A DNA stretch of 64,000 nucleotides from Entomortierella parvispora E1425 (lineage: Eukaryota > Fungi > Mortierellomycota), in NCBI GenBank assembly GCA_020891255.1, contig BQFW01000002.1, positions 3,928,395 to 3,992,394 on the forward strand. The letters are read 5' to 3'. Positions 8,382-60,193 of this stretch are shown here, one piece after another. The position numbers were made by a program, and so were the translations under genes. The notes below the pieces were generated by a model. That model had not been told where the DNA came from and did no database searches. It saw nothing but the letters and a program-made list of their open reading frames with translations. Every line of letters starts with the position of its first letter. Within the stretch, counting starts at the first letter, position 1.

Positions 8382-8577
8382 TGAATGGGGGGAATGGAGT
8401 GAAAGAATGAAGGCCAAGTTTGCGCCTTTGCCCCTTTGCTTCCCCTTTCGTCCATATTCCCGTGATCATGTCAATCATTCAACCCACACAAAAAAAAATA
8501 GCGCTGGGTCCCTCCTCCGGTACTAATCATGTATGGTTTCCATGATTTATTGAATCAGAACGAGTTGGATCAAGCAT

Positions 8578-8843: not shown

Positions 8844-8874
<31 letters not shown>

Positions 8875-9718: not shown

Positions 9719-9827
9719 TCTGGCTAATAAATAAAGAGAGAGAGAGACAAAATGGCTGTGCCAGCTGTGATCTTTTGTGGGTCCAAAATTTTTGCAATTT
9801 ACAGAGGGTGACACGTGACTAGATATT

Positions 9828-11342
9828 TTATTCTTTTGGCGGTGTGGATCCCTCCAAGTGGTCCTTGAGAGAATGCTTCGCGGTGCCGCGCTCAAGAGGC
9901 TTGTTCTGAGTAGGCGACGGCTTCCATCCGATCTGAGAAGAGAGAAATGAAAAAAGACTGTTAGATGTAGGCTCTCCTCTGTGTGCCTGATCTACTTTAA
10001 TGACATCTTCTCGTACCATATACAGGATTTGAAAGGTTGCAGGCACACTTCCATCCGGGTTTCCATAAATCTCTATTGGGAAGAAGAATATTCAGATGAG
10101 AACACGATACCGACATCTGTGCGCACCATCCAGAAGAGACATGTAGATGATATTCAACTTGAAAAGCCAAAGATGAATTACCCTTGTAAATGGCCGCTGC
10201 TGCCATCATTGTATCCCTCTTCAGGAAATGTCTCCTGTTGATGATGGCATTGCTCTCTCCCATCGCACGGAGGTCCTGCATGAGCTCGAGGGCGCTTGGA
10301 TAGTTTACCGTCACCTCATCTACATCAACGGTTGTTAAGGTGAATCCTGCGCGAGAAAGTAGACTTCCTAGGTCTCGACTGTCAGCCATAGGCGAAATTC
10401 TTGGTGAAATGCCTCCTTCCCGATCCTGCTCTGCCAATTGTAATGATGTTCTATGAGGATAGATAGACCAAGGTCAGTCGACAATACCAGAGATTGGCTT
10501 TGTGCAAAGCAAAAAGTAGATATCGTACCTAAGCTCATAGAGCGTGTCTCCACCAAAGAGTCCTGCAATGAACACGCCGTCAGGTTTAAGGCTCCTTTGG
10601 ATCTGGATCATGGCTCCTGGAAGGTCATTGATCCAGTGCATTGACAGGCTGCTAATAACGGCATCCAGACTGTTCTCTTTAAATGGAAGATTCTCTTCAT
10701 CCACAACTCTTCTCTCCACGGGCACTAGAGGTTGTCAGGTTTTCAGCATCCGCGTGTCAGTAATGGTGCTCCAGGCGAGAGAATAAGACTACCGATCCTC
10801 CTGAAGAGCTGATTACCTTCATATTCCACATCCTTGTCGCGGTTCAGCATGGTCTCTGACATATCGCACATGATCAGCTTTTTCATCATGTCAAGATCGA
10901 CATGCTTGGCAATATGGCCTGATCCCGATCCAAGCTCCACCACCTCATTAAATTCACGCTTGATATCCTATTTTGCAAAATGGCGTGAAGAGCACCTGCA
11001 TTAGTCTTGAGAGTGGATACATCGACATGACATGGCATGGCATGCTAATCAGCCCCTGTGGACTCTTACCAGCAGACGATCCACTACGCGGAAGGCGACC
11101 TCGTCCTTGACATAGTCGACCTGACGACTCAGCTCTACATCAGAGGCAGCTCGTTCCTTTTGAAGGCGCTTTGCCTTGCGGTCAAAGACCTGGAAGGTGG
11201 CGGGCACGGTCTTGTTGTTGGTAGGTGGAGCCGTGGCGTAGAATCGACTGGCCCGGATGCATCGGGAGGCGAGCGTGGGAGCATTGCGGCGGAGCGCGGC
11301 TCTTGAAGCAGGGGCAGCCAAGGACGCAATGTGAGGCAACAT
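9828..11342 (-). CDS. NDUFAF5: Mitochondrial complex I assembly factor, SAM-dependent methyltransferase fold
   Basis: Mitochondrial-type presequence, then [17 protein letters not shown]...[81 protein letters not shown] and IGWKP. Confidence 0.92.
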
Positions 11343-11790
11343 GGGTAGGGCGAGGGATCAGCAGTTCCGATGGAGACAGAAAGAGAGGGCGAAAGTGCGA
11401 AAGAGGGTGACTAGACAGGGCTGATCAGGGGCGGACATGCATGCAAAAAGGAAACAGGGCCGAGAGGACAGAAGAGAGAGAGAGCAGAGCGGGTTTCGGA
11501 GGTGGCTTTGCAGAGCCAATTGTGCTCTGCCTTTGGCTCGCACGCTTCGCACTGCCTTCGCCCGCACAACTCGGTCAAAAAAAGACTGCAGCGCAGGGCT
11601 GGGTGGTGGGTGGTGGTGGGTGGTGTGGACAAGCAGATCTGCCCCGAGAGACACTGCACGAGAAAAAGAGACAATCATCCTTCCTCCGACTGTTTGTCTG
11701 TCTCTGTCCATCTGTCCTTCCGCATTCATCCATCCCCGCCCTGCCTGTCCTTCCCTGCTGCAACCAGCCCTGCATTCCTCCACTTCATCC

Positions 11791-13060
11791 ATGACCTCGA
11801 CCAGAGACTCCTTCCCCATCGGCACCCGCAAGTCGGCCCTTGCCATCGCCCAGACCGTCCAGGTCCAATCGGCCCTCCAGCGACTGAACCCGGACAAGTC
11901 GTTTCCCCTTCTCCAAATGACAACCACCGGTGACAACAACCAGATCCAGCCCCTGTCATCCATTGGAACGACTGCTGTTTTCACTCGTGAGCTCGAAAAC
12001 GCTCTTGAGCGCGAGGAATGCCACCTTCTTGTCCATTCCCTCAAGGACGTGCCAACACAAATCAAGTCCGGCTTTGTAATTGGAGCAATGATGAAGCGTG
12101 AGGAACCCAATGATGTCATGGTCATGCGTCAGGGTGAAGTCAAGGCGCTCAAGGACTTCGGCCCTGGCGATGTCGTCGGAACAAGCAGTGTCCGTCGAGC
12201 CAGTCAGATCAGACGACTCTGCCCTGGAGTTCAAGTCATGGATGTGGTGGGTGTATTTTTTTTTCTTTCCTATTTTTTGACATCTTCGCTTTTGTTTTTT
12301 GTTTTTTTTGGCCCTTGGCTCCAAGGACCTCGAAAGCTAACATTCTGTTCCGATGCTCCTTGCCTGATTGAATCGATGATAGCGCGGAAATGTGTAAGTA
12401 ACCGATACTGATTCAAATGGCAGATCAAACAACCATCCTGTCCTTATGGCCTCTAACTATATTTACTCTTTCCCTTCAACCTACAGCAACACCCGCCTGG
12501 CTAAGCTCGATGCTGCTGATTCGCCATACACCTGCTTGCTACTGGCTGCTGCTGGTCTTCAAAGACTCAACTTGGAGGGTAGAATCACATCAAAGTTGCC
12601 TCCAGATGTCATGTTGCATGCGGTTGGTCAGGGATCTATCGGTATCGAATGTAGAGCGGACGATGCAGAAACGCTGGAGCTGATTAAGCCTCTTGACCAT
12701 TTGCCTACGCGCTTGCGTTGCGAGGCTGAGCGTAGCGTGATGAGGATCTTGGAAGGCGGATGCTCTGTGCCAATTGGCGTCTGGACCGAGTTTGATTCTT
12801 CGGACGCCGAGGATGTGGGAACGTTGCGCTTGAAGGCTATGGTCTCGTCTCTGGACGGATCAGAAATTGCCGTCTCAGAGGCATCTGCCGCAGTGAACGG
12901 AAGTGTAGAGCTCGCCATCGAGTTGGGAAAGACAGTGGCTTCACAGCTTTTGGCTCAGGGAGCAGAAACTATCCTTGCAAAGGTCCTTCAAGATCGCAAT
13001 CAAACTCTTGTCCCCACTGGAACTGGTGAGGAAAACACCATCAAAGGTTGGGAAGTATAA
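11791..13060 (+). CDS. HEM3: Porphobilinogen deaminase (hydroxymethylbilane synthase)
   Basis: IGTRKSALA, LVHSLKDVPT, VGTSSVRRASQ, RGNVNTRLAKLD (needs the 11-nt exon 12383-12393), HAVGQGSIGIEC and LEGGCSVPIG. Confidence 0.97.
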
Positions 13061-14975
13061 ACCCAGGAACCCCCTCAACCTTTTACTTTCGATAATAAAA
13101 CCAATGACAGTTACCCGTAAACATATAAAAGAATCAGGAGGGGCCCATTCCTCTTAAATCGCGCTACCCTGTTGTTGAGACTTCTCCCGGTGAACTCCTG
13201 CTGGTGGACTCCTGGTATCAGCAGTTAGGCCCCCTTCCGGGTGAATCTCGCAAAGGCCGTTAACCTGTTAAGAAGCGATGGTGCGGTTCGCGCCTGATGT
13301 AATCAATCTGTCTGGGATCGTGAGGGGGCGGAAGGCCGAAGGGGTTTTCTTGGGACCTCCGCTAGGAGCTGCTGGCTTTGCTATCCTCCTGAAGACGTAC
13401 TATTTATTTTTTTTGAAAGTACCACAGCCGCGGTTACCCCGCCTAGCCGTGCCTGCACCCAGTTGATGATGGACCCTTTACATAACCGTACACAGAGAAC
13501 GCGATAGACGGCTGCATCGCCATCCATGATGGCAACGCCGTGTTGTGAACGTGCGCAATCTTCCGCGACCCTGGTTGGTCGCAAACCCCATCTGCCTTTC
13601 CCGTCACCCCTGCCATCTAAATCTACACATTGATCTCTTTCGCGATCTCACGGTGCGTGGCGCCTTGGCTTGCATCTCTAACGACAAGAGTACGTAGGCT
13701 CGTGCCCATGTATCTCCGCGTCTACAAATATACGATTACCTGCCAACAAGATATCAGTTCGCAGCTAGAGCCAATTTGTAGCCACCATTCACACGAATCC
13801 ACCTCTAGATCGTCCAGTATGATCGCAAAATGCAGAGTCTTTGGTCAATGAGCAAGAGTTGAAACCTCAAGACGACTCCTTGGAAAACTGATAAACAACA
13901 ACAACATCGTAGTGTCTACAAAACATCAATCACCGCAACCACCCTGTCAAGGCCCAAGAGAGAAAGTGCTACTGGCCCCACCGCTCCACATGGAAGTTTG
14001 GATGCACTCACTTCCTCCTCACAACTCGGACACCGTGTATCAGAGATGGTGAATCAGACACACTTTGCCTTCCGCTGTAGGGACACCAGAATTTGCCCCT
14101 TTTACCCTTTCACACCAGATCCTTGTAAAAAGACGACTGTCATCTTAAATGAATCTCGCGCCTCAAGCGGACCCCTCCGCAGAGAGTGCTGGAACGCGTC
14201 TTCAAAAGCATTGGTAGTGGAGACACCACTGGGGTAATAAAAAAGAACATGAACGGCTCTTGGCAACACCAACAAAAAAAAACATCAGCTAGCTGTCGAT
14301 CACAGCCGCCACTTTAACCAATTCCAACACTCTATACGATCTCACCTGCATCGAATCTGTGGTGGCCATGCAAGGAACATCAATAAGCGAGCATGCGTAT
14401 TACGTGTTTAATATCCGAGAGCTGAGCAAAGGCGATCCGACGAAGAAGGCCTTGGGACCTGAGGTCCTAATTGTCGTTACTGAGAGGGTTAACTGGTCAG
14501 AACGTATCAGTCGAGTCGAGTTGTGTCGTGATAATAGCTACACATCATGAGGAGAGTGGTTCCTTTGCTCTTGTGGAGCCTAGGTTTACCCTTACATTGC
14601 TGTCGCGATTTCTACGTTTTTGCCGCAGAGGGGAATGCTCGGAGCCACTGTCTCCTGAGATTTTGTGGTTCCCCTTCTCGTCACCTCTTTGTCCTCCTTG
14701 TTCCAAGATGCTATCCAAAAGCTGGACGCATGCATACAAGGGAACAACCATCCACGTTCTGTAGACCCCGTATAGGATTTGGAGCAGATGGAATGGGGGA
14801 GGTTTCAAGCCCTTGTGTTCCGGGGGCCAGCAGGCTCTTTGGAGGCTGGATTGTATTGCCCTGAATTACTTTGTTTTCCAGAGGATGATCCGCCTCATCT
14901 ATTTAAGTAGTGCGTCTTGAGATGCGTACCTCTTCATCTTTATCTTTGCCTCCACCGCCGTCCCTACCTTGCACA

Positions 14976-31643: not shown

Positions 31644-34135
31644 TTATTTGGTGTTGCCATCCTCGTCTCTGCTCTTCACCCAGTCGGGAGGATCGCCCAC
31701 AGACATGGTGACCGGGTCTACTAGGCCATTGTAGCTCTCATACACTGTGTAGTCAAAAGTCTTGAACTCTCGATCAATCATCTCTAGCTGGGCAAGAAAG
31801 CGGTCTTTGTCGCTCAAGTTGGTAAGGGCCGCTGCTGCCTCGATGTTAACTGCTAACGGATGCATGGCCGCCATTGTTGGTTTTGATATCTGGTGTCGTA
31901 GTCGTGGAGGTTGAGCATGCGGCTTCTGCTGTGGAATGATCTTTTGTCGAGACACCGAATGATCCTGAGGTATGGGGATGATTACGGGCGATGTGATTGC
32001 CATCTGTGGTTGTGTTGCCTGTAATGGATCTTGCTGCTGCTGTTGATCAAGTTGTTCATCCTGAAGATGTTGTTGAGGTGGTTGAAACAGACCTTGCTTC
32101 GGCCCTTTGGTGCCACTCGTAGGAGGAGAGCGGGCCTGTTCTGGGCTAACTGGGCTAGGCTGCATCCCATTGTCGTCATTAATGCCCTTGGATAAGACCT
32201 GGCAGCGCACCATCCCTCTCAGATTCCCTTCTATCCTCGCCGAGGCTGCTTTGCGGATCTCATGAATATTGTTGTCAGCCAACGCGATCCTTTCTCCTGG
32301 CCGCATATCCTCGGCCGGTGGGATGGCCATTGTCGGTAGCAACGAAGTAGCAGGGTGGTTACAAGCCGGCGATTGAGGGTTCACAGTCGCTAAAGTCCTC
32401 CAGTCCACTCCGTGTGGGCCAGTGGTCATATCAGACGGAAAGGTCATAGACACTGGCAGTTCATGGTGAGCGCCTGGGTCGATTGGTGAAAGGGGTATAG
32501 ATTGGAATTGGGTTTGCCGTGCCAGGTCTGGATTGCTAGGCTTTGTCGAGAGAGGTGTCGTCTGCACTGGCGTTGGTGGTTTTTGGTCAATCATCGGCCA
32601 GAGGCCCGATTTCTTTTTTAGGAGAGCTGGCGATCTGCGTCCGGCAACTGAAGAGGCGTTCGAGGCACGGATCCTTTTCATGCTCTCCTCAATTTCCTGA
32701 TTCATAGCTTCCATTGCACGTTGCGCCGCCGCTGCTTCCGCGATGGCAGCATTCTCCTCTGTCTTGCGCCTCTCATTCTCTTCTTTCATCGCCCTGTCCT
32801 TCTCTTTAAGCATCCGCTGAGCTCTTTGGCGGGTTGATCGATAGGTAAGCGGCTCATCTTCCATCAAGAGCTCTTCAAGATCGAACGATATGTCGAAGTT
32901 GGCGTCATCTGCTGGTGGTTTGAAGCCAGGGGAGAGTTGCTTTAGCTCTAGCATATGCCACCACTGCTGCAAGTTCATCCTTGCCCGAAGAGCAGCGAAT
33001 TCGAAGCAAGCGTGCAGTTGGATGCCCTGCATTCCACCGTGAATTCCTAGACGCTCTGTTGGATCTCGAGTCAAAAACTGGAGGACTGTTAGAGTTCTGT
33101 ATGGGATGTGTAGTCCAAACAAAGGTTTTGGTCACTTACACCTTGTATGGCTGAGATGCACTCACGCGATATTCCCTCCTGTGGGGGATACTCGATCGAC
33201 CGATGGACAATATCTCTTTTCAGATCCGCAATGTTTTCCGACGTGAAGGGTCGTTGATTGTAGATGCATTCATAGAAGACGACGCCCAATGCCCACCAAT
33301 CCACGCTTGTTCCATAGCCTGTTCCTTTGAATACCTCTGGTGCCATGTAGGCAACTGTTCCCGATTGTGAGGTCAGAAACGGCCGATCCGGTGTCAATTT
33401 GCATCCAATGTTAAAGTCGGTCAGGTGTGCGTGCCCGTTCTCATCCAACAAGACATTGTCCGGCTTAATGTCTCGATGAACAATTCCAAGTGAATGCAAA
33501 TGGCTGACGGCTGAAGCGATCTCTGCTATCCAGACCTGAACTGTTGTCTCATCAAAAGTCCTCCTGTTGAGATGGAAACGAAGATCGCCCCCCATCCTAA
33601 TTCAAGAGAAGAAAGACGACTCAATTTTTGCAAGTCCATGGAAAAGGAGCTGTCCCTGTCAAGAATGCCTGCGACTCTTACATGAGGTCCATACACATGT
33701 ACATGTATTCGTCATCCTGAAACGCGAAACGCATGTTCACGACGAACGCGTGGTCCAATGACTCGAGTATTTGGCGTTCCCGCAGAATGTTTTTGACCGC
33801 CTCCATCTGGATGACTTGTGCCTTTGAGATGTATTTCAGCGCGTAGAGTTTTCCTGTCTCACGCCTCTCAACCATCCGCACCTAGAACACGCGAGAAGTC
33901 AGGCATTGCTTTTTGCCTGTTATTCGCTCATTCCTCTCGCCTCACCTTTCCAAAGGAGCCACCGCCAATGACTCGAAGTAGTTTGAATTGAAAGAGGTTG
34001 ACTAGAGATAGGAATGAGACACGGACGTTCAGAAGTGGGCCATCAATTCAATGCAGACGTAGAGCACCATAGAAGAAAATGCTTGCCTTCATTGGCAAAG
34101 ACGCCCTCTTGGTCTCGACTGGACCCATTCCCCAT
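31644..34135 (-). CDS. AGC Ser/Thr kinase, STK32/YANK-like, with a long C-terminal tail
   Basis: MGNGSS (myristoylation-type start), IGGGSFGK, YALKYISK, HRDIKPDN, LTDFNIG (DFN as in STK32), GTVAYMAPE and DWWALG. The first intron (34002-34086) has a GC donor. Confidence 0.92.
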
Positions 34136-34350
34136 TCAGTGATGGCTCGCTGCTGGTAGAGTGGACTAGGATGGTCGTTTTTGGGCTGGATTGTCCAGAG
34201 CGGTGTGAATGATGTAAAAAAACGAATAAAAGTTGATGGAGCTCGAATCAGGTTACACCGCAACGGCGAATGACTGAGTGGCTGTGCGGCAGCCGTTCGA
34301 ATGGGATTGCGCTCAAGGACCAAGTTTCTGCGCGCGCGGAGTGATGAATC

Positions 34351-34359
34351 CTTGGGGGA
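34351..34359. repeat. Left 9-bp target-site duplication CTTGGGGGA
   Basis: Identical to 41250-41258; abuts the TIR. Confidence 0.93.
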
Positions 34360-34614
34360 TAGGCTCGACCCAGCCCTCTCTCCTCACCACGTGACCGCCG
34401 CAGGTGGTCATGTCCTCGTAGAGGGGCTGGCGGCAAATGTGGCCCTTTACATAGGATGAATATAAAAGGAAGGTGCTTAAGGGTTGTCATTAAGGGTTTG
34501 TCGATCTGGGTCACATCGCTGTCGGTTGTCGAATCACAACGCCTCCCAACGATTCACCTTGTCACATTCCTTCCCCACATGCCATCCCATTCCTGACATG
34601 CCTTCCGTTTTCTT
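34360..34614 (+). repeat. Left terminal inverted repeat (255 bp)
   Basis: Reverse complement of 40995-41249 except one C/T difference at 34582. The ORF track shows the same peptide from both copies (34248-34514 - and 41095-41280 +). Confidence 0.97.
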
Positions 34615-34680
34615 CTGTCTTTCCTTTGTCATGTGTCAAAATTTAGTCAGAATATATTACTTGATGTGAAAACCCTCCTT

Positions 34681-35564
34681 CTAGTTGTTTTTGTTCCTCT
34701 TCCCGAATTGCAGCCCACACTCGGTCGGCCTGTAGTACTTCTGGTCGAGGCGTGCTCGTCTCAATATCTGCGAAGCTGGGGGGCCACTAGAGCCGCTGGA
34801 GCCAACAGAGGGCCTAGAAGGACTTCGTGCTTGATGATAGGGACTGGTCTCCCTAGGGCTGGGCCCCCTTGGATCAGATTTCATTTTCGAATTGTACTGG
34901 TGCTGTGCAAGAGAACTGGAAGTAGAGCTTGAAATCCACCTCTCGGTTTTCTCATGAATGCTAACAAAACCTGATAACCTCTCGTGCATTTGATAGGTCA
35001 TGTTGTCCAAAGATTGCAGTCGACGCGAAAAATCCGCAGTATTTGAATCCACTTTCTCGTTGAGCTTCCTGAAGAGATCCACGACTAGATGTTGTGTCTT
35101 TGATTCTTGATCCGTAGGTGGTCTGTACTGCTCACTAGTGCCAAGTGTGGCGGAAGTAGAAGGGGGCGATGAAACAGCCAGAGTTGAAGTAGGTGACTAC
35201 AAATGCCACAGGAGACAAAAAATAAAAAGACATGGCGTTAAAATCTACATTACAGTATATGATGCGAACTCGCATTAATCCATTTGTCATCAACACGACG
35301 TACCGGTTCTGAAGCTGGCTTGGGCAACAGTGTGGCGGAGTAAAACTTTGGTACCACATGGATATTTTTCTCCGATAACTCTTGTATCAACAGGGGCTTG
35401 ATGAGAGTACATGCCTTTTGGAGCTTGCGCCCTTCAATGTGGTCCTGTAGAGTTTGAGATCTCGAGAAATCCCTCCCGCAGACGCATACGTGTGCGAAGA
35501 ATTGAATCTTAACATCACCCTTGGGAATGGTGATAGTAACACTGAATTCAATGGGCTTGGGCAT
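34681..35564 (-). CDS. Transposon cargo gene: degenerate C2H2-like finger + coiled coil + S/P-rich tail (~268 aa)
   Basis: Exon 35564-35274 (MPKPIEF...CVCGRDFSRSQTLQDH...WIN) joins exon 35196-34681 (SPTSTLAV...DLFRKLNEKVDSNTADFSRRLQSLD...NKNN*) in phase 0 across a 77-nt GC-AG intron. Confidence 0.6.
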
Positions 35565-35828
35565 GATGTTTTTGCGCTTGATGAAAGATGGAGGTGAAGT
35601 GATGCTGTCTGCGGTGTGGAGAAGAGAATTGATGAGGAAAATAGAGAAAAATGAGAGCGTATCATCCCCTTTAAGTATGTTTTTGCAATTGGGAATGCGA
35701 TCAAGTATCGAAGGCACACAAAGCGGTCCACGGCGCATTGTTGGGCTTGATGTCAGTGCGCGAACGAGAATAGTGCTGGCGCGTATGCAAAGAGTGCGTG
35801 ATCAAAGAGGCACTGACACATGAACAAT

Positions 35829-36132
35829 TGTCGCGTATGCAAACAGTACGCAACAAAATCGCATGGGAATAAAGGGGGGCCAGTGAGTCCTGGCGCGTAT
35901 GCAAACAGTACGCAACAAAATCGCATGGGAATAAAGGGGGGCCAGTGAGTCCTGGCGCGTATGCAAACAGTACGCAACAAAATCACATGGGAACAAAGGG
36001 AGGACAGTGAGTCCTGGCGCGTATGCAAACAGTACGCAACAAAATCACATGGGAACAAAGGGGGGACAGTGAGTCCTGGCGCGTATGCAAACAGTACGCA
36101 ACAAAATCATATGGGAACAAAGGGGGACAGTG
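35829..36132. repeat. 62-bp minisatellite, ~5 copies, inside the transposon
   Basis: Units start at 35829, 35891, 35953, 36015 and 36077 (TGGCGCGTATGCAAACAGTACGCAACAAAATC...); a partial copy lies near 35777. Confidence 0.95.
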
Positions 36133-36213
36133 CGTGTGAAAACAGTGCCCGATCAAAGGGGTGCTGGACAGAGCTGATTTCATTCATTCAGAATGAAGGT
36201 TGAGACGAGGAAC

Positions 36214-36320
36214 AATGCGAACACCAAGGCGAAGAACAAGGTGAAGGACAAAGCGAAGGACGAAGCGAAGAACAAGGCGAAGAACAGGGCGAAGAACAAA
36301 ACGAGGACAAAGCGAAGAGG
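36214..36320. repeat. Degenerate 12-bp repeat (AAGGCGAAGAAC-like), ~9 copies
   Basis: Read directly; translates as KAKN or EEQG repeats depending on frame. Confidence 0.8.
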
Positions 36321-36453
36321 ATATGAAAGGAAGAGGTGGGCGGCGCCCGAGACGAAAAGAGAAGTCCCTGGACACGGAGTGCAGGCCGCACGACTCAACT
36401 TCTTGTCGATGGTCGCACGTCCAATTCTCGAACAATGAACCTTTCTCCCTCCC

Positions 36454-36543
36454 ATGTCGTCCCTTGTCTTCCTATGCCGTCCCTTGTCTTTCTATGCCGT
36501 CTCTTGTCTTCCTATGCCGTCCCTTGTCTTCCCAGGCCGTCCT
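36454..36543. repeat. 20-bp tandem repeat (ATGCCGTCCCTTGTCTTCCT), ~4.5 copies
   Basis: Units start at 36454, 36474, 36494, 36514 and 36534. Confidence 0.9.
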
Positions 36544-36707
36544 GTGCCATACGCTATCTTCCCATGCCTTCCCGTAACGTCCGCTCTCATTTCATGTCTT
36601 CCATGAAGCGCTCTCCTCCTTTCATCGTTTTCTCAAGCTTCGAACTTCACTCCATCGACATTCTGCCTTACGCAAACACCTGTTGTTGAGCCCTCGTCTT
36701 TCGCAAA

Positions 36708-39067
36708 ATGAATCCTTCACCAACGAAGCGACCATTCCAGTTCGTTGAAAGCCTGTCTGTTCAAGAGATTGTTTTCGAATTCATCGGACAACTGGAGAGG
36801 CATCAGGTCCCATTATTAGCTGCCTTGCGAACTTTGTTCAATTCGACTCATCCAGGCACTGAAAAGGTGTTGACCTATTTCTATCGGGACGGCGGGGCAG
36901 CAGAGGTTGTCGGCATTTGGGCAGCAACGAACAAGGATAAATCATTCAACAAGGCTGTCACGGCCATCGTCGTCAAAAATGGAGGTGCAGAACTCAACCG
37001 TTTGTCCAAAGTTGAGGAACTTCGACATCCAGCAAACGCGATCGACCTCGACAAACTCCAAACATTCGAGCTTGACTTCATTCAACAACACATCGAGGCC
37101 TGCGCTCCAACTGTTCTTGAAGTTATAAAAGGACTTGCCTCTGTCAACAGCGTCAAGAAATCGGCTTCCACGATTGTGATGATATGTAGCGTTCTCCTCT
37201 TTCTTCGGAGCCAGAAGTCGAATCATTTCCAAATGATGATGGGCCTCTACCTTTACAGCTGTGGAAGTCCAAGTGCCGTGGTTCACCTTCTGTCCAAGGC
37301 TTCAATCTCTGTGTCGCACACCTCAGTTTTGCGTGCTCTCAAGGGTAGGTGTTTCTGAACCTCCCATGAATCGTACTTGAAAGCGCCTGTGCCATTGATA
37401 TTTTCGTAATCTTAACGATCGCTATAACGCTGCACGCACCATAGGAATGACGGATGCCGCGCTGGAGAAGATTCGTAAGGCTGTGGTTGACAAGCCTTGG
37501 TATCTTGTCTATGACAACATCAACTTTGCGAGTCGAAAATCGGACCAGCGGATCGACAATTCTGACTCATTTGAGAGTGGCACCATGGCTACAGTTGTGA
37601 TGATGGATGAGACGATTAGCCGTGATGATATCCGGCTATCATACCACCGACTTTGCCTCTCAGACCTCATACCTGGCGCTGACAGCTACGGGCACATGCA
37701 GGCTGTCACGGAGAACGCTCTACTAAAGGTTCTTGCTCGGTCATCCAAGGGCTATGATTGCTGCCGCAAGTCAGATCCAGCACGAGACAAACTAGCCACA
37801 GTGAAAACCGTCGCTCACCCATTGCCTTCAATGCATATTGATCAGTCAAGCGTCGCCGGAAACCTGGAGGTGCTCAATACCATTATGGAGAAGACGCTTC
37901 GACTACCTCAGGCGTGGTTCGACGACAATCGAAAAATCCTAGTTGCAGGCGACCAGCTTACCATCAGCAGGATCTCGACGGCAATGGAGTACAAGGCAGT
38001 CGATGTCTCACCATTTCATCGATTACAGTTCGCAATGCCTTGGTTACAGCTTTTTCATCTGGAGATGGCGTTCTGTGGCCTCATTCTCCAAACTCATTGG
38101 GGTTTAGCAATTCAGCCAGGGTCGTTACATTTCAACACAGTTTTTCTGAAGCGGAAGCGGGTCAGCCTGAAAGATTTTGATTTCCACGCTGCGCACGAAC
38201 TCCTGGAACACACATTTGAGGCGATCGTCATACGAGTTTGGGAAGTCTATCTCGTAGATCTACCAGTGGCTGCTGAAGGGATGAGCAGTGATCAGCTGCA
38301 GGAGATTGTAGCAGAGAAGGTCGGACACATTGTGAACGATCTCATATCGCCAGATCAAGATGAACTGCTTTATCACAGCCGTACAAACAGGAACATGGCC
38401 CTCCTTCTTCGACACCTGCTTTACTACTTCGAGCTCCGCGCAGCAATCAGAGCCGGCGACGTTGGCAGGATTGAGGAGTCGCTGAGATGGATCACGATCA
38501 TGTTTCAAAATGGCATCAACAATAACTATGCCCTGGAGCTGTTGCGTGTTCATTGTGCCATCCGATATACATTGACCCCCCGAAATGAAGAGAAGATTCA
38601 TGGCAACTTGGTTAGTTAACACTAAGGGCAAAGAAAATGGATGGATTCCGACCGACATGTATCAGGAACACAACAACAAAATAATGAAGGCTACCTTTGA
38701 GTTGAAAGGGAGCAACTCAAAGTGGGATACGCGAGAGTCATCGATATCGGTCAACATCCGCACCTTTGAGGCAATTAGGAAACAGTTTGACGAATGCTTC
38801 AATCGGACCCACAACTCAAGTTACCATTCAGCTGTCTCAGCAGAGAAGGATATAAATCAGCTCGTGTTGAAATTTCGCCAGTGCAATATTCTGAGCGAAG
38901 ATTTTAGTGCCGGGGACCCTGATTTCGAGATAGCTTTGGACAAGGATCTGTATGCCTGTGGCCTGGCACTCTTGGTTGAATCGAGAATTGATAATTTTAA
39001 AAAAACAGGGACATTAGATGACAACGAGGATGAGGATGAAGATGCTCCAGATGATCCTTTTCAATAA
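36708..39067 (+). CDS. DUF6589/Academ-type DDE transposase (~752 aa after repairing one +1 frameshift)
   Basis: Exons 36708-37344 and 37445-39067. Motifs: SQKSNHFQMMMGLYLYSCG, YDNINF, GDQLT, LFHLEMA, RAGDVGRI, NNYALELL, then WLVNTKG...IPTDMYQEHNN in the next frame. The frame switches at the C6 run 38576-38581. Confidence 0.85.
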
Positions 39068-39251
39068 ACTTACTGCTCTTGCCTCCGAGTAGAGGAGCAG
39101 GAAACTAATTAATGTTTATTGCGGGATTGCAGTGCTGAAGAGCTCTTCATACGAGGGCATAGTCAGTATGAACCGTGGGTCAGGGTACATTATGTTGGTT
39201 ATGGTACGTTGGTATCATGGGCTGACTACCCCATCTAATTGCTGATCTATG

Positions 39252-40799
39252 TCAGTGGTCCCAGCTTTCAGACATAAGCCGAGCCACCTCGGAACGAGTT
39301 TTCCGTACTGTATCCTGAACGAGATCAGAAAGCTCCTTGAAGTGGCTTGGTTTCCAAGGAGACCAACCGACGAGGGTTTCCTTCACGTCTTCTGCCCGTA
39401 AAATTCTGGGAGCTCTCTTGATAAGCTTCATAATGCAATCGTCGGATAGCAACACCTCGGGTTTGAACTGCAAGAAGGTGGTAAGAACAATCTCATCGTA
39501 AATCCCTTTACGCCATTTCTTTAGCGCCTTTCCTAGAGCAGCCCTCTCCTCGTAGTCAAGTAACTCGCCCTTGCGGATGGGTGGAAGAGGCTTGTTTCGG
39601 CGAGAGGTAAATGGTGGTAGTCCAGCAGCGTGATAATCCTTTTTACAAATATCGCAGCAGTTTTCGGCAATAACTCGGGGAGCATTGCGAAATATGTTGT
39701 TAAGAACCTGTCGACGACATGTCTTTGTCGCCAGGAATTCATTAAGCTGTACGTCCTCGTGCTTGGCATATTGTTGCTTGAGTGTACAGTATACAATGCC
39801 ATATCCTTGCATATCGGGGCTTCGCGCCGCACGTCCAAGTCGCTGAACAAGCGATAAGACAGAATCCGGAACTCCAAACTGTATAACACAATCAACATCA
39901 CTGATATCACAGCCCATTCCGACCGCGTCGGAAGCGAAAAGGACTCGAACTTCACCCCTCCTGAACTTCTCCATAGTGTCAGACTTGTATTCGTCAGACA
40001 AGATGGCAAAGTAACTTGCAAACTGGCCATTTGGTCCGGAGAGGTTGAGCAGGTGCTTATGTGCTTTGTGTAGATCCCGAATCAACTCAAAATAGACAAT
40101 GGTTTTCCTCTGGTCCGTCAGGAGAAATTCGAGAGTGATGGCCTGTGGTGAATGAGTCCGCATCACCATGAGCTTCACATTGGGCCTGTCATTGCCGGTA
40201 TTAATGACTGGGACATTGAGTGCAAGGTTGAGGGATGCCTTGACTGTATGAAGAACGTGTGGGGGCAGAGTGGCAGACATTGCTACGAAAGCAACATGAG
40301 GTGGGAGCCGAGGGCGTAATAGTCCGAGCTTTGAGTAGTTTTTCCTGAATTTTGCCCAGGTGTGGATGCAGTGGGCCTCATCAAGGACAACTGCACGTAG
40401 CTGATAGTGCCACCGTGGACTGGACCAGAGTTCCTCCACCAAGTCGTTCTCGAAAATGACTTCTGGTGTCATGAAAACTGCTCGGAAGACACCAGCGGCA
40501 AGCTTGGCAATTTCACCGGGATTGATTGACTGGTCTCCACCGCCTAAGAGGCATAGACTTCTAATACCAAGGCTTTCCAGTTTTCCATGCTGCTCCTTCA
40601 TGACAGCTCGCAACGGAGACACAATAACAATAACACCTCGGTCCCAGAACAACAACGGCAAGAAGAACACCAGCGACTTGCCCCAGCCGCATGCAGCAAT
40701 GAGAACAATGTCCTTTCCATGACCAATGGATTTCGTTACTTGCAACTGCTCGCTCTTTAGTCGGAACCCGAATTGATTCCCAGCAAAGCTCCATTGCAT
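39252..40799 (-). CDS. RecQ-like SF2 helicase encoded by the transposon (515 aa)
   Basis: AACGWGKS (I), MTPE, LDEAH (II), MSAT (III), FASDAVGMGCD (V), QRLGRAAR (VI), zinc module CRRQ...CCDIC, and a helical HRDC-like tail. Confidence 0.93.
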   Translation of the reverse strand: MQWSFAGNQFGFRLKSEQLQVTKSIGHGKDIVLIAACGWGKSLVFFLPLLFWDRGVIVIVSPLRAVMKEQHGKLESLGIRSLCLLGGGDQSINPGEIAKLAAGVFRAVFMTPEVIFENDLVEELWSSPRWHYQLRAVVLDEAHCIHTWAKFRKNYSKLGLLRPRLPPHVAFVAMSATLPPHVLHTVKASLNLALNVPVINTGNDRPNVKLMVMRTHSPQAITLEFLLTDQRKTIVYFELIRDLHKAHKHLLNLSGPNGQFASYFAILSDEYKSDTMEKFRRGEVRVLFASDAVGMGCDISDVDCVIQFGVPDSVLSLVQRLGRAARSPDMQGYGIVYCTLKQQYAKHEDVQLNEFLATKTCRRQVLNNIFRNAPRVIAENCCDICKKDYHAAGLPPFTSRRNKPLPPIRKGELLDYEERAALGKALKKWRKGIYDEIVLTTFLQFKPEVLLSDDCIMKLIKRAPRILRAEDVKETLVGWSPWKPSHFKELSDLVQDTVRKTRSEVARLMSESWDH

Positions 40800-40994
40800 T
40801 GTTGGGGATCTCCTGAATGTTGAAGGAGGGATTAACGTCGGAGGGATTTAATGTGTCCATTTGTCGCCTGGTCAATTGGTGCTACTTTTGTAAGAATTTA
40901 ATAAAAGAGGCTGATGGAAAATAATACTGTGAAAGACATGGAAGACAACGGATGGTATGGGAAGGAAAGAAAGGGAGGGAAAGAAAGGGAACAT

Positions 40995-41249
40995 AAGAAA
41001 ACGGAAGGCATGTCAGGAATGGGATGACATGTGGGGAAGGAATGTGACAAGGTGAATCGTTGGGAGGCGTTGTGATTCGACAACCGACAGCGATGTGACC
41101 CAGATCGACAAACCCTTAATGACAACCCTTAAGCACCTTCCTTTTATATTCATCCTATGTAAAGGGCCACATTTGCCGCCAGCCCCTCTACGAGGACATG
41201 ACCACCTGCGGCGGTCACGTGGTGAGGAGAGAGGGCTGGGTCGAGCCTA
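40995..41249 (-). repeat. Right terminal inverted repeat (255 bp)
   Basis: Partner of 34360-34614. Confidence 0.97.
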
Positions 41250-41258
41250 CTTGGGGGA
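41250..41258. repeat. Right 9-bp target-site duplication CTTGGGGGA
   Basis: Identical to 34351-34359. Confidence 0.93.
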
Positions 41259-41347
41259 CTGGTCCTTGATAGACCCTTAAGTTTTCTCCATAAGATCAGC
41301 CCCCGGAGGAGTTGGCTGAGTTCTCTCTTTCTCTATCTCCAATCAAA

Positions 41348-42313
41348 ATGGTTAGTCACGTGGAGTGCAATCCATCGCTGACCGGATCCACCCAGGATCG
41401 CCTGCCATCCATCCATTGCGACACCAGTGGCAACAAGCGAACCATCCGCATCGGCAGTACGATCCAGTTCAAGATCAGGAGTGGAAGCGCCAATATCATC
41501 ATCGACACCCAAGACCGACATGAACGAAAAGATGAAAATAGGATGTGACATGGAACAAGTCATCCAACACAGCCATGACACCCGACTTTGCATTGCGAAA
41601 AGGACCAACACAAATTTGAGGAATAAGAGCAGGATGGAGATCTCCTACCAGTCAGCACCATCATCAATTCATCAATCAATTTACTGGGAGCTCTTAATCC
41701 TTCAAAGGACAACAGCTCGAGGGAGAGCATGGCCGGCCCTAGACAGCGACACTTTGATTTCTTTTACGTCTGGAAGTTCCCATGGATGAATCGACAAAGT
41801 TTTTCAGATCCTTTGGTGGCAACACGGTGTCATGGATGCAATTAGTCTCAACGAACAGAACCTTCTTGGGCGAGCAACGCTACGACAAAATACTGATCAA
41901 CTGTCTTTGTCCCTGTCCATGTAGGCTAAGCGCACTAAGAAGGTCGGAGTTGTCGGTAAATACGGTGTCCGTTATGGTGCCTCGCTCCGTAAGCAGGTCA
42001 AGAAGATGGAAATCACCCAGCACAGCAAGTACACTTGCACTTTCTGCGGTCGTGTAAGTTTCTGCCTGCTTTCTTGGTTCTCAGAGCTACGTTGTATTAC
42101 GGAGCACCTCCCTTTTTTCCAGACATGAAACGCTTGCTCATACTATTTCCTTGTTGTTGTGAATAGGACGCCGTCAAGCGCCAGGCTGTTGGTATCTGGG
42201 GCTGCAAGGGATGCAAGAAGGTTATGGCTGGTGGTGCCTGGACTTTGTCCACCACTGCTGCCGCCACTGTCCGCTCCACCACCCGTCGTCTCCGCGAGAT
42301 CATGGAGGTTTAA
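41348..42313 (+). CDS. RPL43: 60S ribosomal protein eL43 (L43/L37a)
   Basis: ATG-only exon 41348-41350, 574-nt intron, then [43 protein letters not shown]|[16 protein letters not shown]...RRLREIMEV*. Confidence 0.97.
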
Positions 42314-54100: not shown

Positions 54101-57100
54101 TTGTTCTGCTTGGTCTTCACTTCAAGGCGTTGATCATTTCGACTGAGTCCTGATTGGCATCCGGATTGGAAACGCACCAGAGGAAAGGTATGTGTGTTCG
54201 AGGTTTGCAAGTCTGTTGATTTTCTTGACGTTGATTGAAACGTTGAGGTACCAATTGTAATGGCAGAGTGCAATGTCGACAGGTTTGGGCTTTCCATGAA
54301 ACAAAGCAGCATGTTGCGCGTGTCTCTGAGATGAAGAAACACCGCAAGCACCGCAAGGGGGAAAATGAAATGTAGGCTCGAGATGAGAAAAGTAGGAGCT
54401 AGGAAACAGCGTCGAGACGGGAATGGCGTGGAAGAAGGAGGACCAAGAGGATGATGTGTGGGTCTCCGATGTTTGTTGGAAGGAGACGGAAGGAGGCATC
54501 AGAAGCAAGCATGGTGCCAGCTGCTGTCGTTATTTCCTACTCTGCAGGGAAATAAAGAGACCATGCCTGCCTGGACCGGCACTTACTTTTTTTTTTTTGT
54601 GGGTTCAGCATCGACCTTTGTCTTTCTCGCTCCCCTCTACATCCTTGAATCCCGCTTCATGGACTACCGCGATAGATATCGATAGACCATCCCGCCTGGC
54701 TGACTGACTGAAGAACAATGATGACAAGATATGGCCATTGAGGTCACGGTTGACCATGCCTTTGCACTTCCTTCTCCTTGATAATCGCCAGACACCACGC
54801 CACTCCAGCAGAATGCAGGGCCATCTGGAAACAAAAGAAGCTGAAAGTTGGCCATAATGTCAACGCCTCAGAGCTGGTTGTAGACCCGACAGTCAAAAGC
54901 AACACTTGCAAGTACGCGTGAAATCCACCAAGTGCAGAAAAAAGAAATGAGAAAATGGCTATCATGGATCGACCTTGAAAAGGCTGCCTTGATCTCATGA
55001 TCCGTGTCGCAATATCGGCGATGTATGTCCCTGCCCCTTCTCGAACCACCAGGAACTTGGATCGAACTTGGCATGCATTTCCGTTGTAAGATTGTTATTG
55101 TCTCTCAGAAATATCGACTCTCCTTCGTCAGGTCCAGCTTGTTATTATTACCTGCCGGATGATGAGTCACTTTCCCCTAGTTCGCTTTGATTCAACAGTA
55201 GGCCTGTACATCCTACACCACACAATTGTATGTGGCTCCTTACCTTGTCCTCCAGTCTGCAATTCATAATAAACCATGCCTTTCGGCCCTTTTCGTATTC
55301 TTGCCCTGTCTGGTCGTGACAACGACTCTTTGTCTCCTCGAGAAGTCCTGGCTCATGACTTGTCTCCCTTGCACTTCAGATAAGTCATGGGAAAAGCAAA
55401 TCGAAACAAAGTCAAGTCGTGTCAGCTTTCTTCTCATGTATCGCTCTCCTCCCAATCCTTTCTTGCCTTTGTCTTTCCCTTCGTTTCATTTTTCTTCCAT
55501 CTTGCCTCTTGCATTCCACTCGGCCGCCAACTAAGTGGATATATGAACTACATACCCATTGATTGAGCCAGGTTCGGCTGCTTGTCTTCTGTTTATAGTC
55601 CTGATTGTTGATGTGGCGCGTTTCGCGTGGAGCCCATCTCTTCTGTTGATAGACTGCCAAACCAAAATGTTCCTCTACATTGTCCTCTTCTAGCTTTCGT
55701 GGCCTCTTTCTCTGTTGGAGCACCACTGCCTAAACCAAGATCGTTTCATCTTGAGGTAGGCGAGTGCCATAAGCAGGGCAAGGACAGTGAGGAGCCGAAA
55801 AATACACGATCCTGTGCTGCGGTTATCTGCTCTTGCGGGACAGATCAATCTCATTTAGAAGAAAAAGCGGAGGAACTGCCTTTTGCGATTACCTGCTGAG
55901 AAGGCGTCGGAGCGAGGAAGTTCCACGAGACTCGAAAGAAATAGTTGTTCTTTTGATGTACCTCTCTGTCGAAGCCTTCATCTTTCTTGCCTAGTGAGAG
56001 GATAGCCTGCTCAGTTGTCTTTGTCGTGCGTGCCCTTCTCTTCAATCCCTGGATCACTGAGGGAAGCAGCACAGATACATGTCAAATGGTAGGGTGCGAT
56101 CGATGGGTGAACGCGCAGGAAGAGGCTGTGGAGGTAGATTCAGAGCATTCGTTCATGGTCGGATTAATGGAGACCCACTTGTCCTTGACTTGGAGCCCTA
56201 TTCCCAGTGGCACCTGTGGAAACCGGACGCGGAATCCAAAAAAAAAAAAAAAAAAAAAAAATCGCGTCTTGACGCGCTTTCCTCTCCGCCAGAGCACAAC
56301 AAACCGAAGGGACTTCGAGGAAGAGGTCGCACCATCCACTGTGACAACCCTCGCACCGTGCCTGCATCGAGATGCACATGTCCATCCAAGATCTAAAGAA
56401 GGAGCAATCTTGGAGAAGCACTTTGCGGCCGCCGGCACAAAAAAAAAGTCAGTGACTCTTCACCGTGTTGTCGTTTGTTGTCCGCATCGCATGGACTGAT
56501 CGTTCCTGAACTCTCTTGCCCTTCTCTTCTCTTTCCTCTTGTCCCTATCTTCTCTTCCCTTCCATTCCCTCTCGACAATTATCCCAAGACCATTGTAGAG
56601 GGGGAGAAATGCGCGTTGTAGTTTGTTGCCGTTGGGACTGAACTAGTCTCTTTTTCTCTCCCTTCCCTCCATCTCTCTTTGTCTCTTACCTTCCTAGGCT
56701 TGCCATCTCGTCTCTTCCATGCCTCTCATCTCTTCCATACCTCCTCTTCCATTTACAGCATTCCGTCATGCCGGACAGATGGGTGCTGACCCGACCTTGA
56801 CTTGTTGGAAACAAATGCCCTTCAGCTCCAGCAGCAGAGGAAACTTCAAAAAAAAAAGGGGACAAATGTCCTCATGTTCTGACAAGTCGATCCAGGCCAT
56901 TCCCTGCGGCGCGACAACGAAGAGAAGTGGAAGAAGATATTGCGCTGCCGACTGTGGCATCTATCTCCGCATCAGAGTGGACATGTCCATCCAAGGGAGA
57001 AGTAATTCTTGGAGGAGCAGTTTACAGCTTCTGGCGAGAAAAAAAAAACCAAGAACCCTGCCCCTTTTTTGTTTGTTGTCGCATGGACTGATCGTTTTTC

Positions 57101-57385
57101 TCTCCTTTCTGCTCTCCTCCTCTTTCGGAACTCGCTATCTTCCCTGTTGCTTCTCTCTTCTCTTCTCTCTTGCTCGTCTCTTCTTCCGCCTTGTCCCTCT
57201 CCTCTTTTCCCTCTTTCTCTTCTCTTCTCTTCCGTCTTGTTCCTCTCGTGTCTTCCCTCTCTTCTCTTCTTTCTTGCTCCACCGTTTTCTTCCTCTTATT
57301 TTCCTTTGCTGATGTCTTCTTTTCTCTTGAACTTGTCAACTGTCCCTTTCTTCTTCTCTCTCCCTTCTTTCTCGTCTTCTCTTCT

Positions 57386-57530
57386 CTCTTGTTCGTCAGA
57401 CTTGATCGTCTCTCGTCTTCTCGTCTCTCTTGTTCGTCAGTCTTGATCGTCTCTCGTCTTCTCGTCTCTCTTGTTCGTCAGTCTTGATCGTCTCTCGTCT
57501 TCTCGTCTCTCTTGTTCGTCAGTCTTGATC
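57386..57530. repeat. 41-bp CT-rich tandem repeat, ~3.5 copies
   Basis: GTTCGTCA recurs at 57391, 57432, 57473 and 57514. Confidence 0.9.
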
Positions 57531-57950
57531 ATTTCTTGTCTTCACTCTCGCACTTTTTGGTCGCACGATGTGAGTTTCGTGCTCGTCCACCCTTCCTCGG
57601 GATGACAGCGCAGAAAAAAAAAAAAGCACAAAAGGGACCCGCATGGACTGATCGCACCGGGGTCCTCTTCTCCTCCCTCTTGTTCCTCCTCCCTCTTGTT
57701 CCTCCTCTTCTCCTCCCTCTTGTTCCTCCTCTTCTCCTCCCTCTTGTCCCTCCTCTTCTCTTTCCTCCTGTCCTCTTCCCTCCCAAGACCAATGTTCTTT
57801 TGGATGGGGCCAGTGCAGCCTCCATTTGTCAAAAAAAAAAGGCCGAGGGGGAAACGGGCGGTTGTTGTTTGTTGGATGGAGCGTCCCTGACCTTGTGTCT
57901 TTTTCTCCCGTCTTCTCTAGCCATCTCAACCCATCCTCCTTTCATCCCCC

Positions 57951-58198
57951 TCGTCTCTTGCATTCATCTCGTCCCTTGCATTCATCTCGTCCCTTGCATT
58001 CATCTCGTCCCTTGCATTCATCTCGTCCTTTGCATCCATCTAATCCCTTGCATTCATCTCGTCCTTTGCATCCATCTCATCTCTTGCATCCATCTCGTCT
58101 CTTGCATTCATCTCGTCTCTTGCATCCATCTCATCTCTTGCATCCATCTCGTCTCTTGCATTCATCTCGTCTCTTGCATTCATCTTGTCTCTTGCATC
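57951..58198. repeat. 18-bp minisatellite (TCGTCTCTTGCATTCATC-like), ~13-14 copies
   Basis: Read directly; translates as CIHLVP/CIHLVS repeats. Confidence 0.93.
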
Positions 58199-58424
58199 GT
58201 TTGACCTTCTCGTCTCCTGCATTCCACAGTTCTTGCATCCCTCTCTCTTGTCTCTCTTTTTTTGCATCCCTTTCCTCTCATGTCTCTCGTCTCGATTCCT
58301 GCATCCTTCCTTTCTCCTCGACTCTTGCATCCATCCTTACCCTGTCCTCCCGTATCTAGCATCCGTCTTCTTTTTTGGATCTTTCGCCTCTTTTGCATCT
58401 CTCGTCTCCTGCCCTTTTCCTTTT

Positions 58425-58936
58425 TGTATCTCTCTTCTCTGTTGCATCTCTCTTCTCTGTTGCATCTCTCTTCTCTGTTGCATTTCTCTTCTCTATTGCA
58501 TCTCTCTTCTCTGCTGCATCTCTCTTCTCTGTTGCATCTCTCTTCTCTGTTGCATCTCTCTTCTCTGTTGCATCTCTCTTCTCTGCTGCATCTCTCTTCT
58601 CTGCTGCATCTCTCTTCTCTGTTGCATCTCTCTTCTCTATTGCATCTCTCTTCTCTGTTGCATCTCTCTTCTCTGTTGCATCTCTCTTCTCTGTTGCATC
58701 TCTCTTCTCTGTTGCATCTCTCTTCTCTGTTGCATCTCTCTTCTCTGTTGCATCTCTCTTCTCTGTTGCATCTCTTTTCTCTGCTGCATCTCTCTTCTCT
58801 GCTGCATCTCTCTTCTCTGCTGCATCTCTCTTCTTTGCTGCATCTCTCTTCTCTGCTGCATCTCTCTTCTTTGCTGCATCTCTCTTCTCTGCTGCATCTC
58901 TCTTCTTTGCTGCATCTCTCTTCTCTGTTGCATCTC
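58425..58936. repeat. 18-bp minisatellite (TGCATCTCTCTTCTCTGT/C), ~28 copies
   Basis: Read directly; open in several frames (REERCN, CCISLL, MQQRRE). Confidence 0.96.
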
Positions 58937-60193
58937 ATCTCGTGCATCCTTCTCCTCCCATGAATCGAGCTCACTTCTTTCACCTTTTGCGGCCGCCGTC
59001 TCAACCGACCCAATGCATCCAACTCGACTCTTACATCAAACATCAGCGGGTCTTTTGTGCCCCTGTCTTCGTTTTCGCTCTCTTCTTTTCGTGTTGACGC
59101 AAGGTTGGGCGTTTCCTCTCGCTTTCTCCTTCCTTTCTCACGCGTTGCTCGCTACTCCTTCCCTTTGTCGTCAACAACTTCTTTTACATCTAATCATACG
59201 GAGAAAGCTCATTCAATCTAGCCATGAACCAGACTGGACCTGCGACAAACGAGATTCATGTAGGAAACGTGGTGGTCATTAATTCAGGCGCGCACTTCTC
59301 AGGTAAGTCCTCTCTACCATCAACTGCTAGACTTCTCAGCCCCTCAGGTATAGCATGCAGTAGCGAGGAATGAGTCCGTTCCAGGGCAAAGTCACCGCAG
59401 TCTCATGTGTTTTGCGCCCTCGTCTCTGCCCTCTTGTTCCTACTTTTGTCTAGCGTGTACAACTTTTAATAAAAAAACTACGTGACAACTGCACGAGCTG
59501 ATGTTCTTGTCTGCATGCACGATGAGGAGAGTAAACACTGCAGACTTGGCTCTTTTTCCTTCTCGTACTTCATGAAATGCAGCCACGAATTGTCGTAAGT
59601 GGCTAGCTCTCGGCTCCTGTCACCACTTCACTCCTCCAACTTAGGAGAGAATTTTTTTTTCCAAAAAAAAAAGAAATCTAAGAACAGCAGTTACGCATCA
59701 ACCACCTTGTCAATCGCCAATTTTTTCTTCATGAATACAGTCCTTTGATGAATAGCCACCTCCCCATATGAAAATCACGTTGGTCGTCAACGTAGATATC
59801 AAGGAATAAGCGTTCGATTTTCACAAAAAAAGAGAATAAAAAATGCAATTGCCCAAGATCTACCTTATGGATTGACGATTTTGTTGGCTTGATAGAATAC
59901 TTATGAGGAGAGCTCTCTGATGCACCGTATCTCATATCTCTACGAAGGAAAAAAAGCACCTTGTTTTTATATCTTCAGAAAAGCAAGGCCGAAGCCGGAT
60001 TCGAACCTGGGAGAAAAAGTAAACAAAAGGATTTACCTAATAGTCCAGAAAGTCTAAGCCACCCTAATATCAGACATTTCCTTTTTAGGACAAAACAGAA
60101 AATGTATCGTACGGTCGGTCAGAATGGCGCAAACGATGCATAGACGCTCTAGGACGTTGTTAAACTGTTCAAATACGCGACTTTAGGGCGAAT

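Follow-up and report, generated by a model that had tools for sequence, protein, structure and literature searches.

The AcademH lineage of DNA transposons is defined by an aspartate-aspartate-glutamate (DDE) transposase accompanied by a RecQ-related superfamily 2 (SF2) helicase and by target-site duplications (TSDs) of 9-10 bp, as opposed to the 3-4 bp of AcademX (PMC10045372). Oggenfuss et al. 2024 (PMC10799480), citing Kojima 2020 (Mobile DNA 11:15), record AcademH as present in few copies in Basidiomycota, Ascomycota and Mucoromycota, and Academ is among the few DNA transposon superfamilies reported from Mortierella alpina and M. elongata (Muszewska et al. 2017, PMC5751038). A further fungal lineage with a RecQ helicase, KolobokH, belongs to the Kolobok elements (PMC9587614). 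The locus described here lies in the soil fungus Entomortierella parvispora, within a stretch of 64,000 nucleotides of contig BQFW01000002.1 (assembly GCA_020891255.1), referred to below as the window, in which it occupies positions 34360-41249 (6890 bp). With a probability of about 0.85, we read it as a cut-and-paste DNA transposon of the AcademH type that is autonomous and has been active recently, probably up to the present.

The boundaries of the element are set by its terminal inverted repeats (TIRs) and by the short duplication that surrounds them. A repeat search returned inverted arms of 259 nt, 99% complementary, at 34360-34618 (left TIR, plus strand) and 40991-41249 (right TIR, minus strand). 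Compared base by base, the arms differ once within their first 255 nt, at offset 223, and again at offset 256, beyond which the similarity stops, so that the repeats can be given as 255 bp with one mismatch or as 259 bp with two; neither arm holds coding sequence. An initial annotation, made from the letters alone, had counted 255-bp TIRs with one mismatch, and that count is exact. It had also described TAG...CTA termini and an exact 9-bp TSD: the left end reads TAGGCTCGACCC and the right end GGGTCGAGCCTA, and directly outside both of them the same 9-mer, CTTGGGGGA, stands at 34351-34359 and again at 41250-41258, with 9/9 positions identical. A 21-nt terminus occurs at only two sites in the 64-kb window, which are the element ends themselves, against a chance expectation of 0.

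Besides the copy in the window (copy A, with its 9/9 TSD), two more were located from 90% protein clusters, which hold two further E. parvispora members for each of the transposase and the helicase. Copy B spans 7612-14497 of locus L009 (6886 bp; EMPS_06690/06691) between two identical 9-mers, CTGAAAGAT, and copy C spans 7612-14502 of locus L010 (6891 bp; EMPS_01012/01013) between ACTTTGTCC and ACTTTGTCG, which agree at 8/9 positions. The count of copies and TSD lengths that the initial annotation had proposed as a check therefore gives three copies, all with duplications in the range reported for AcademH (9/9, 9/9 and 8/9). Altogether the three copies differ in 16 alignment columns, nearly all of them 1-nt indels, with no clean substitution. 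The flanks are unrelated, so that a segmental duplication with shared flanks is ruled out as their source for the 20 bp on each side.

An estimate independent of the assembly comes from contigs of the source sample, which were placed on 33400-39399. One set (X1) is unspliced DNA, and another (X2) is RNA despite its label 'DNA?', because its contigs have adapters and spliced joints. In X1 the k-mer depth is 240-252 in unitigs of the element and 430 in the TIR, as compared with 79.1 in a unique flank contig of 9.6 kb, and the ratio of about three between element and flank indicates about three element copies. The single TIR mismatch is common to all three of them; TIR identity, tried as an age clock, thus says nothing on age and was set aside in favour of the identity between copies, which is informative. 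The very recent insertion claimed by the initial annotation is accordingly supported by transcription and by the lack of any clean substitution among three copies, but not by the TIRs, whose identity cannot date a cut-and-paste insertion.

The transposase gene is transcribed from the plus strand (36204-39073; 2769-nt RNA contig) and has a coding sequence at 36708-39067 that encodes 752 aa. In the window it appears as three plus-strand reading-frame pieces. The first break is a GT..AG intron at 37345-37444, seen in the RNA contig as a joint from 37343 to 37444 (GT..AG), and the second lies within a run of six C at 38576-38581, 44 codons ahead of E620. The Pfam family DUF6589, against which the initial annotation had suggested checking the protein, matches pieces 2 and 3 (6.6e-65 and 7.1e-21), with profile positions that are contiguous (332/333) over the second break. 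Letter 38576 is omitted in the DNA contigs of the source sample (depth 240.6/240.6) and in the RNA contigs (33.2/33.2), and the extra C is specific to copy A, being missing from copies B and C. Because DNA and RNA contigs both omit one letter at this position, the frameshift is a homopolymer error of the assembly and not a mutation. Where the initial annotation spoke of a "repaired" transposase, the break is indeed present in the assembly, while its cause is an assembly error and no real mutation. The read-corrected protein of 752 aa corresponds at 100% identity to P0175 (residues 1-714) and P0174 (residues 177-752), and a piece of the transposase is 100% identical to EMPS_02080 of Entomortierella parvispora.

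Candidate catalytic residues in the read-corrected protein are D236, D382 and E620, which are kept in 26/26, 28/28 and 26/27 relatives, respectively. They sit in the motifs YDNINF, GDQLT and QEHNN, from which the initial annotation had recognised a DDE-type transposase. The fold was taken from an AlphaFold2 model of P0002, which is 79% identical to the 390-aa exon-2 piece (predicted local distance difference test score, pLDDT, 85.4; predicted template modelling score, pTM, 0.86). In this model the order of elements is beta1-beta2-beta3-alpha-beta4-alpha-beta5, followed by a long helical insertion, with D236 on beta1, D382 just after beta4 and E620 at the start of the helix that comes after the insertion. 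Compared with known structures by VIA-align, it is nearest to the hAT transposase Hermes (Z 11.7; the top match in Foldseek too), followed by the P element transposase (10.5), ISCth4 (7.9) and Transib/RAG1 (about 6). The catalytic domain is thus predicted to be an RNase H-like DDE fold with a large helical insertion. In the Pfam search of the transposase DUF6589 was the sole family, with no MULE, hAT or other transposase family, and no [CD]xxH signature is found between D382 and E620, nor in P0002.

The helicase gene lies tail-to-tail with the transposase gene, on the minus strand. Its transcript is unspliced (39120-41051; 1966-nt RNA contig), and its coding sequence runs from 40860 down to 39252 and encodes 535 aa with a RecQ-type core and a zinc module. 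In the window, the minus-strand open reading frame (ORF) 39252-40799 matches Pfam DEAD and Helicase_C. Alignment with E. coli RecQ (1oyw; 7.6e-38) extends through the zinc module, WRN, BLM, RECQ1, RECQ5 and RECQ4 following next, and GWGKS, DEAH, SAT, QRLGRAAR and four cysteines (C361, C381, C382 and C385) are invariant among the helicase relatives. Both this alignment and the cysteines agree with the initial annotation, which had placed a RecQ-like helicase with a zinc module tail-to-tail with the transposase. The SF2 core motifs I-VI and the zinc-binding subdomain that characterise the RecQ family are therefore present, while the RQC and HRDC domains were not found in the Pfam search. Relatives P0053-P0055 begin about 25 residues earlier (MD..QEIP.NA.ELCWNQFGF), a stretch that the window encodes in another frame, and the shift was traced to the GGG at 40779-40781. 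Only copy A has the extra base at 40779; copies B and C lack it, and their helicases start MDTLNPSDVNPSFNIQEIPNNAMELCWNQFGF (535 aa in copy B); P0172 and P0173 likewise open with MDTLNPSD...ELCWNQFGF. To judge from these copies, the extra base is probably an assembly error.

Comparison with same-sample contigs and/or with the other copies yields 1-nt homopolymer indel errors of the assembly at 34777, 35222, 35224, 38576 and 40779. Three of these discrepancies, additional to that in the transposase and within the same 6 kb, are a G inserted after 34777 and letters omitted at 35222 and 35224. In the public annotation, four genes lie between a protein kinase gene (minus strand) and RPL43/L37ae (plus strand), including one of 258 aa (minus), a DUF6589 gene of 603 aa (plus) and a helicase gene of 515 aa (minus). 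As a consequence of the indels, the corresponding NCBI models EMPS_02079 (258 aa), EMPS_02080 (603 aa) and EMPS_02081 (515 aa) are truncated, the true lengths being 271, 752 and 535 aa. Since the extra bases are absent from the contigs and/or from copies B and C, the transposase and helicase genes are intact, at 752 aa and 535 aa. All three genes of the element, including the third one described below (ORF3), are covered by X2 RNA contigs and hence transcribed.

The helicase transcript begins inside the right TIR, at about 41051. The 5' end of its RNA contig is marked by adapter at the TIR position equivalent to 34558, which is offset 199 counted from the terminus; 97 nt upstream of that end, at offset 102, is a TATAAAAG box (34461-34468 in the left TIR; 41141-41148, on the minus strand, in the right TIR). 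In the diverged relative L002 both this TATA box and the sequence around it are conserved. Because the helicase contig ends in the TIR downstream of the conserved TATAAAAG box, the right TIR very probably contains the helicase promoter. The transposase transcript, by comparison, does not include the left TIR and starts internally, near 36204.

Between the left TIR and the transposase gene lie a third gene and a tandem array. ORF3 (34643-35564, minus strand) encodes 271 aa after read correction, since the reads carry a G after 34777 that is missing from the assembly, and in copy C it is annotated at this same length. Its RNA contig covers 34634-35518, with a joint from 35196 to 35304 (CT..AC, as for a minus-strand intron) that corresponds to the intron at 35197-35303. 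The product is an orphan: no Pfam family was found for it, the motif in exon 1 and the Atlas look-alikes are weakly C2H2-like and serve as leads, and the only non-self relative among 1.84 billion representatives is on a 1.8-kb contig (L014) without transposon context. ORF3 is not present in relative L002. The array, at 35832-36132, comprises 4.9 units of 62 bp with 97% matches; RNA depth across it is near zero and the RNA contig of the transposase sets in right after it, at 36204, which makes the array a candidate upstream or promoter region shared by ORF3 and the transposase. The 5' leader of the transposase carries a 12-bp repeat in 9.5 units and a 20-bp CT-rich repeat in 4.7 units (36206-36318 and 36450-36542). 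The CT-rich one resembles sequence just inside the right TIR (40940-40991), and this resemblance suggests that 1.8 kb with ORF3 and the 62-bp array were inserted into a formerly longer left TIR or leader.

The pairing of transposase and helicase extends beyond the three copies. Contigs that encode the closest transposases encode the closest helicases as well, and there too the two genes converge. In L002, from a soil metagenome, the two proteins are 65% and 57% identical to those of the window element, and the terminal 143 nt are 84.6% identical, as compared with about 70% for coding DNA. The TIR of L002 is at least 538 bp long (1-104, 6029-6566) and includes the first ~31 transposase-like codons; this N-terminal coding segment of the transposase is thus present at the end next to the helicase as well. 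L002 has about 1.9 kb of additional DNA on its helicase side, and the window element has its additional DNA on the transposase side. A conserved terminus of 26 nt, TAGGCTCGACCCAGCCCTCTCTCCTC (34360-34385 in the left TIR), is near-identical in diverged relatives and is found on other metagenome contigs with unrelated interiors. A metagenome scan with the terminal 20-mer gave five loci, three of which are genuine termini without paired ends, so that no further TSDs could be obtained from them. The remaining two, L003 and L005, were discarded as family termini, as they look like chance 21-nt matches.

Two arrangements of termini in the metagenomes stand apart. In L007 (739-800, soil metagenome) about 60 bp consist of the terminus followed by its near reverse complement, TAGGCTCGACCCAGCC...GGCTGGGTCGAGCC, which could be a mini-element or else an excision or abortive product. 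In L004 (6769-6873) a piece that matches TIR positions 47-85 directly adjoins a complete terminus of this family, as though related elements had inserted in nested or tandem fashion.

More distantly, Amanita muscaria has a helicase relative tail-to-tail with a DUF6589 gene at two loci. Its element measures 5.8 kb, with 132-bp TIRs starting TAGTCTCG (L012 7771-13544 and L013 1-5774), and the terminus TAG(G/T)CTCG is common to it and the window element. CGGAGATT is found both in L012's left flank and in the right flank of L013, as though the contigs had been crossed at the repeat, and L012's two own flanks do not match each other. In the profile search with the transposase the best 120 of 159 matches are all from Mortierellaceae. 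Helicase relatives occur in Agaricomycetes, the pairing with DUF6589 being found in Amanita; the Schizophyllum helicase locus (L011) has no DUF6589 neighbour within its contig. Atlas look-alikes of the N-terminal domain, which serve as leads only, come from Basidiomycota, Ascomycota, Mollusca and Cnidaria.

Set against the described systems, the element resembles AcademH in its DDE transposase, in a separate RecQ-related SF2 helicase encoded beside it (a pairing kept in the relatives and in Amanita muscaria), in its TIRs and 9-bp TSDs, in its low copy number and in its fungal host. Beyond the AcademH definition it has a transcribed orphan gene with a 62-bp array between the left TIR and the transposase, a helicase transcript that starts in the TIR, and 26-nt termini conserved across Mortierellaceae-type relatives. 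The helicase shares with RecQ helicases (1oyw, WRN, BLM, RECQ1) two RecA lobes, motifs I-VI, an aromatic loop and a four-Cys zinc subdomain, but differs from them in lacking the RQC winged helix and HRDC, in its short N-terminus and family-specific C-terminal region of ~130 aa, and in being encoded by a transposon.

Some of these features would also suit a helicase-bearing member of another DDE superfamily, such as KolobokH, MuDR/MULE or a hAT-like group. Among solved structures, those of hAT (Hermes) and the P element are closest in fold, and the element has in common with them an RNase H-like DDE core broken by a large all-helical insertion domain. With hAT the similarity is of fold alone: sequence identity to these transposases is ~10%, there is neither a C/DxxH motif nor a match to the hAT dimerisation domain (Dimer_Tnp_hAT), the TSD measures 9 bp and not 8 bp, and an accessory helicase is present. 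A 9-bp TSD and long TIRs fit MULEs too, and are the only likeness to MuDR/MULE, given that neither a MULE-family Pfam match nor a C/DxxH signature was found. KolobokH, for its part, is a fungal DDE transposon lineage tied to a RecQ-type helicase; there, however, the helicase follows the transposase domain, while the window element encodes its helicase in a gene of its own that converges on the transposase gene from the other strand. The duplication of Kolobok elements is TTAA, in contrast to the 9 bp seen here, and the window element has no [CD]xxH. With DUF6589 as the sole Pfam match, assignment to any of these superfamilies is very improbable.

It is likewise improbable, if not to the same degree, that elements combining DUF6589 with RecQ form an undescribed lineage of superfamily rank, apart from published Academ. 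Such a view could draw on the one preprint found to mention DUF6589, which does not link it to transposons. Yet the element fits the published AcademH definition in its DDE transposase with a RecQ-related helicase and in its TSD length, and that lineage is reported from animals and from fungi including Mucoromycota; Academ had earlier been found in Mortierella by profile searches (PMC5751038); and the groups in which N-terminal-domain look-alikes occur match the reported range of AcademH. Taken at face value, the C6 run at 38576-38581 in the window and the NCBI models truncated at 603 aa and 515 aa would describe a dead relic, with a transposase frameshifted before its catalytic glutamate and a shifted helicase start. 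The probability of this is close to nil, as the DNA and RNA contigs of the source sample are without one C there, copies B and C are without both extra bases, and the assembly has further indel discrepancies within 6 kb.

Reading the element as AcademH does not extend the host range of the lineage, which the initial annotation had thought might be new. Such novelty is not supported, because Academ is already reported from Mortierella (PMC5751038) and AcademH from Mucoromycota (PMC10799480); in addition, public databases hold more than 100 Mortierellaceae DUF6589 proteins. Both the element type and the host group were already known.

All three copies are inserted in 5' intergenic DNA; the distance to the nearest start codon is 98 bp for copy A, 111 bp for copy B and 131 bp for copy C, the regions compared being 34135-34359 and 41259-41348 of the window, 7233-7612 and 14497-14608 of L009, and 7481-7612 of L010. 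Copy A divides the divergent promoter of the kinase and RPL43 genes. These positions suggest an insertion preference for open promoter DNA, among three sites and with selection as a possible confounder. Of the other isolates compared, X7 gave no alignment; X8, which has the same species label, is ~10% diverged in the flanking kinase gene, and its contig alignment ends at 34152, before the insertion junction. The X8 contigs contain none of the interior of the window element; related TIR termini (window 34359-34453) reach a summed depth of up to ~1000 there, as compared with 70 for single-copy DNA. Copies B and C adjoin other mobile elements (L009 16781-17608 and L010 15968-17578), namely a Ty3-like integrase/chromodomain gene and a MULE transposase gene, and copy B is also near a gene with a Crinkler-like domain. 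Elsewhere, positions 57001-59000, near the end of the window and of contig BQFW01000002.1, show an extreme strand skew (GC skew to -0.54, AT skew to -0.69) and may be a subtelomeric repeat.

From these data a course of transposition can be proposed for the AcademH element. The transposase would bind the conserved 26-nt termini and excise the element, cut-and-paste chemistry being likely because the DDE core carries a helical insertion as in Hermes and the P element. Integration would then follow from a cut staggered by 9 bp, preferably in open promoter DNA ~100-130 bp ahead of start codons. The helicase may act as an accessory factor that unwinds or processes DNA at the ends or at the target; alternatively, it may take part in homology-directed repair of the donor gap, raising copy number. 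A more specific version is offered tentatively, with the odds against it as a whole: a mobile AcademH element whose TIR is the helicase promoter, in which an acquired cassette of ORF3 and array displaced the transposase from the TIR promoter and supplies it with a new one, and which inserts ~100-130 bp upstream of start codons.

Several points weigh against these interpretations. AcademH membership is set by described features and not by alignment to Repbase/Dfam Academ sequences. DUF6589 is what we take to be the Academ transposase, on the strength of architecture, TSD length and distribution. Mobility is read from the copies and from transcription, and no empty site, excision or new insertion has been observed. 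The helicase 5' end is a contig end with adapter, not a mapped cap site, and the 5' leader behind it (40861-41051, minus strand) contains four upstream ATGs ahead of the start at 40860, so that control of helicase translation by upstream ORFs is possible. The target preference, finally, is drawn from three sites only.

What the analysis adds for this family is the intactness of the genes, the burst of three copies, the three transcribed genes, the helicase start in the TIR, the orphan gene and the deeply conserved terminus. For genome annotation, the large expansion of DUF6589 in Mortierellaceae is identified as one of transposase genes. AcademH has been defined computationally, and what its helicase does is the question that this family opens to bench work, since intact genes, three identical copies, transcripts and 26-nt termini come together in a culturable host. 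If the TIR is indeed the helicase promoter and the ORF3 cassette an acquired one, the ends of the element would carry transposase-binding sites and a transcription start together, and the family would offer a tractable system for the role of a RecQ helicase in DDE transposition.

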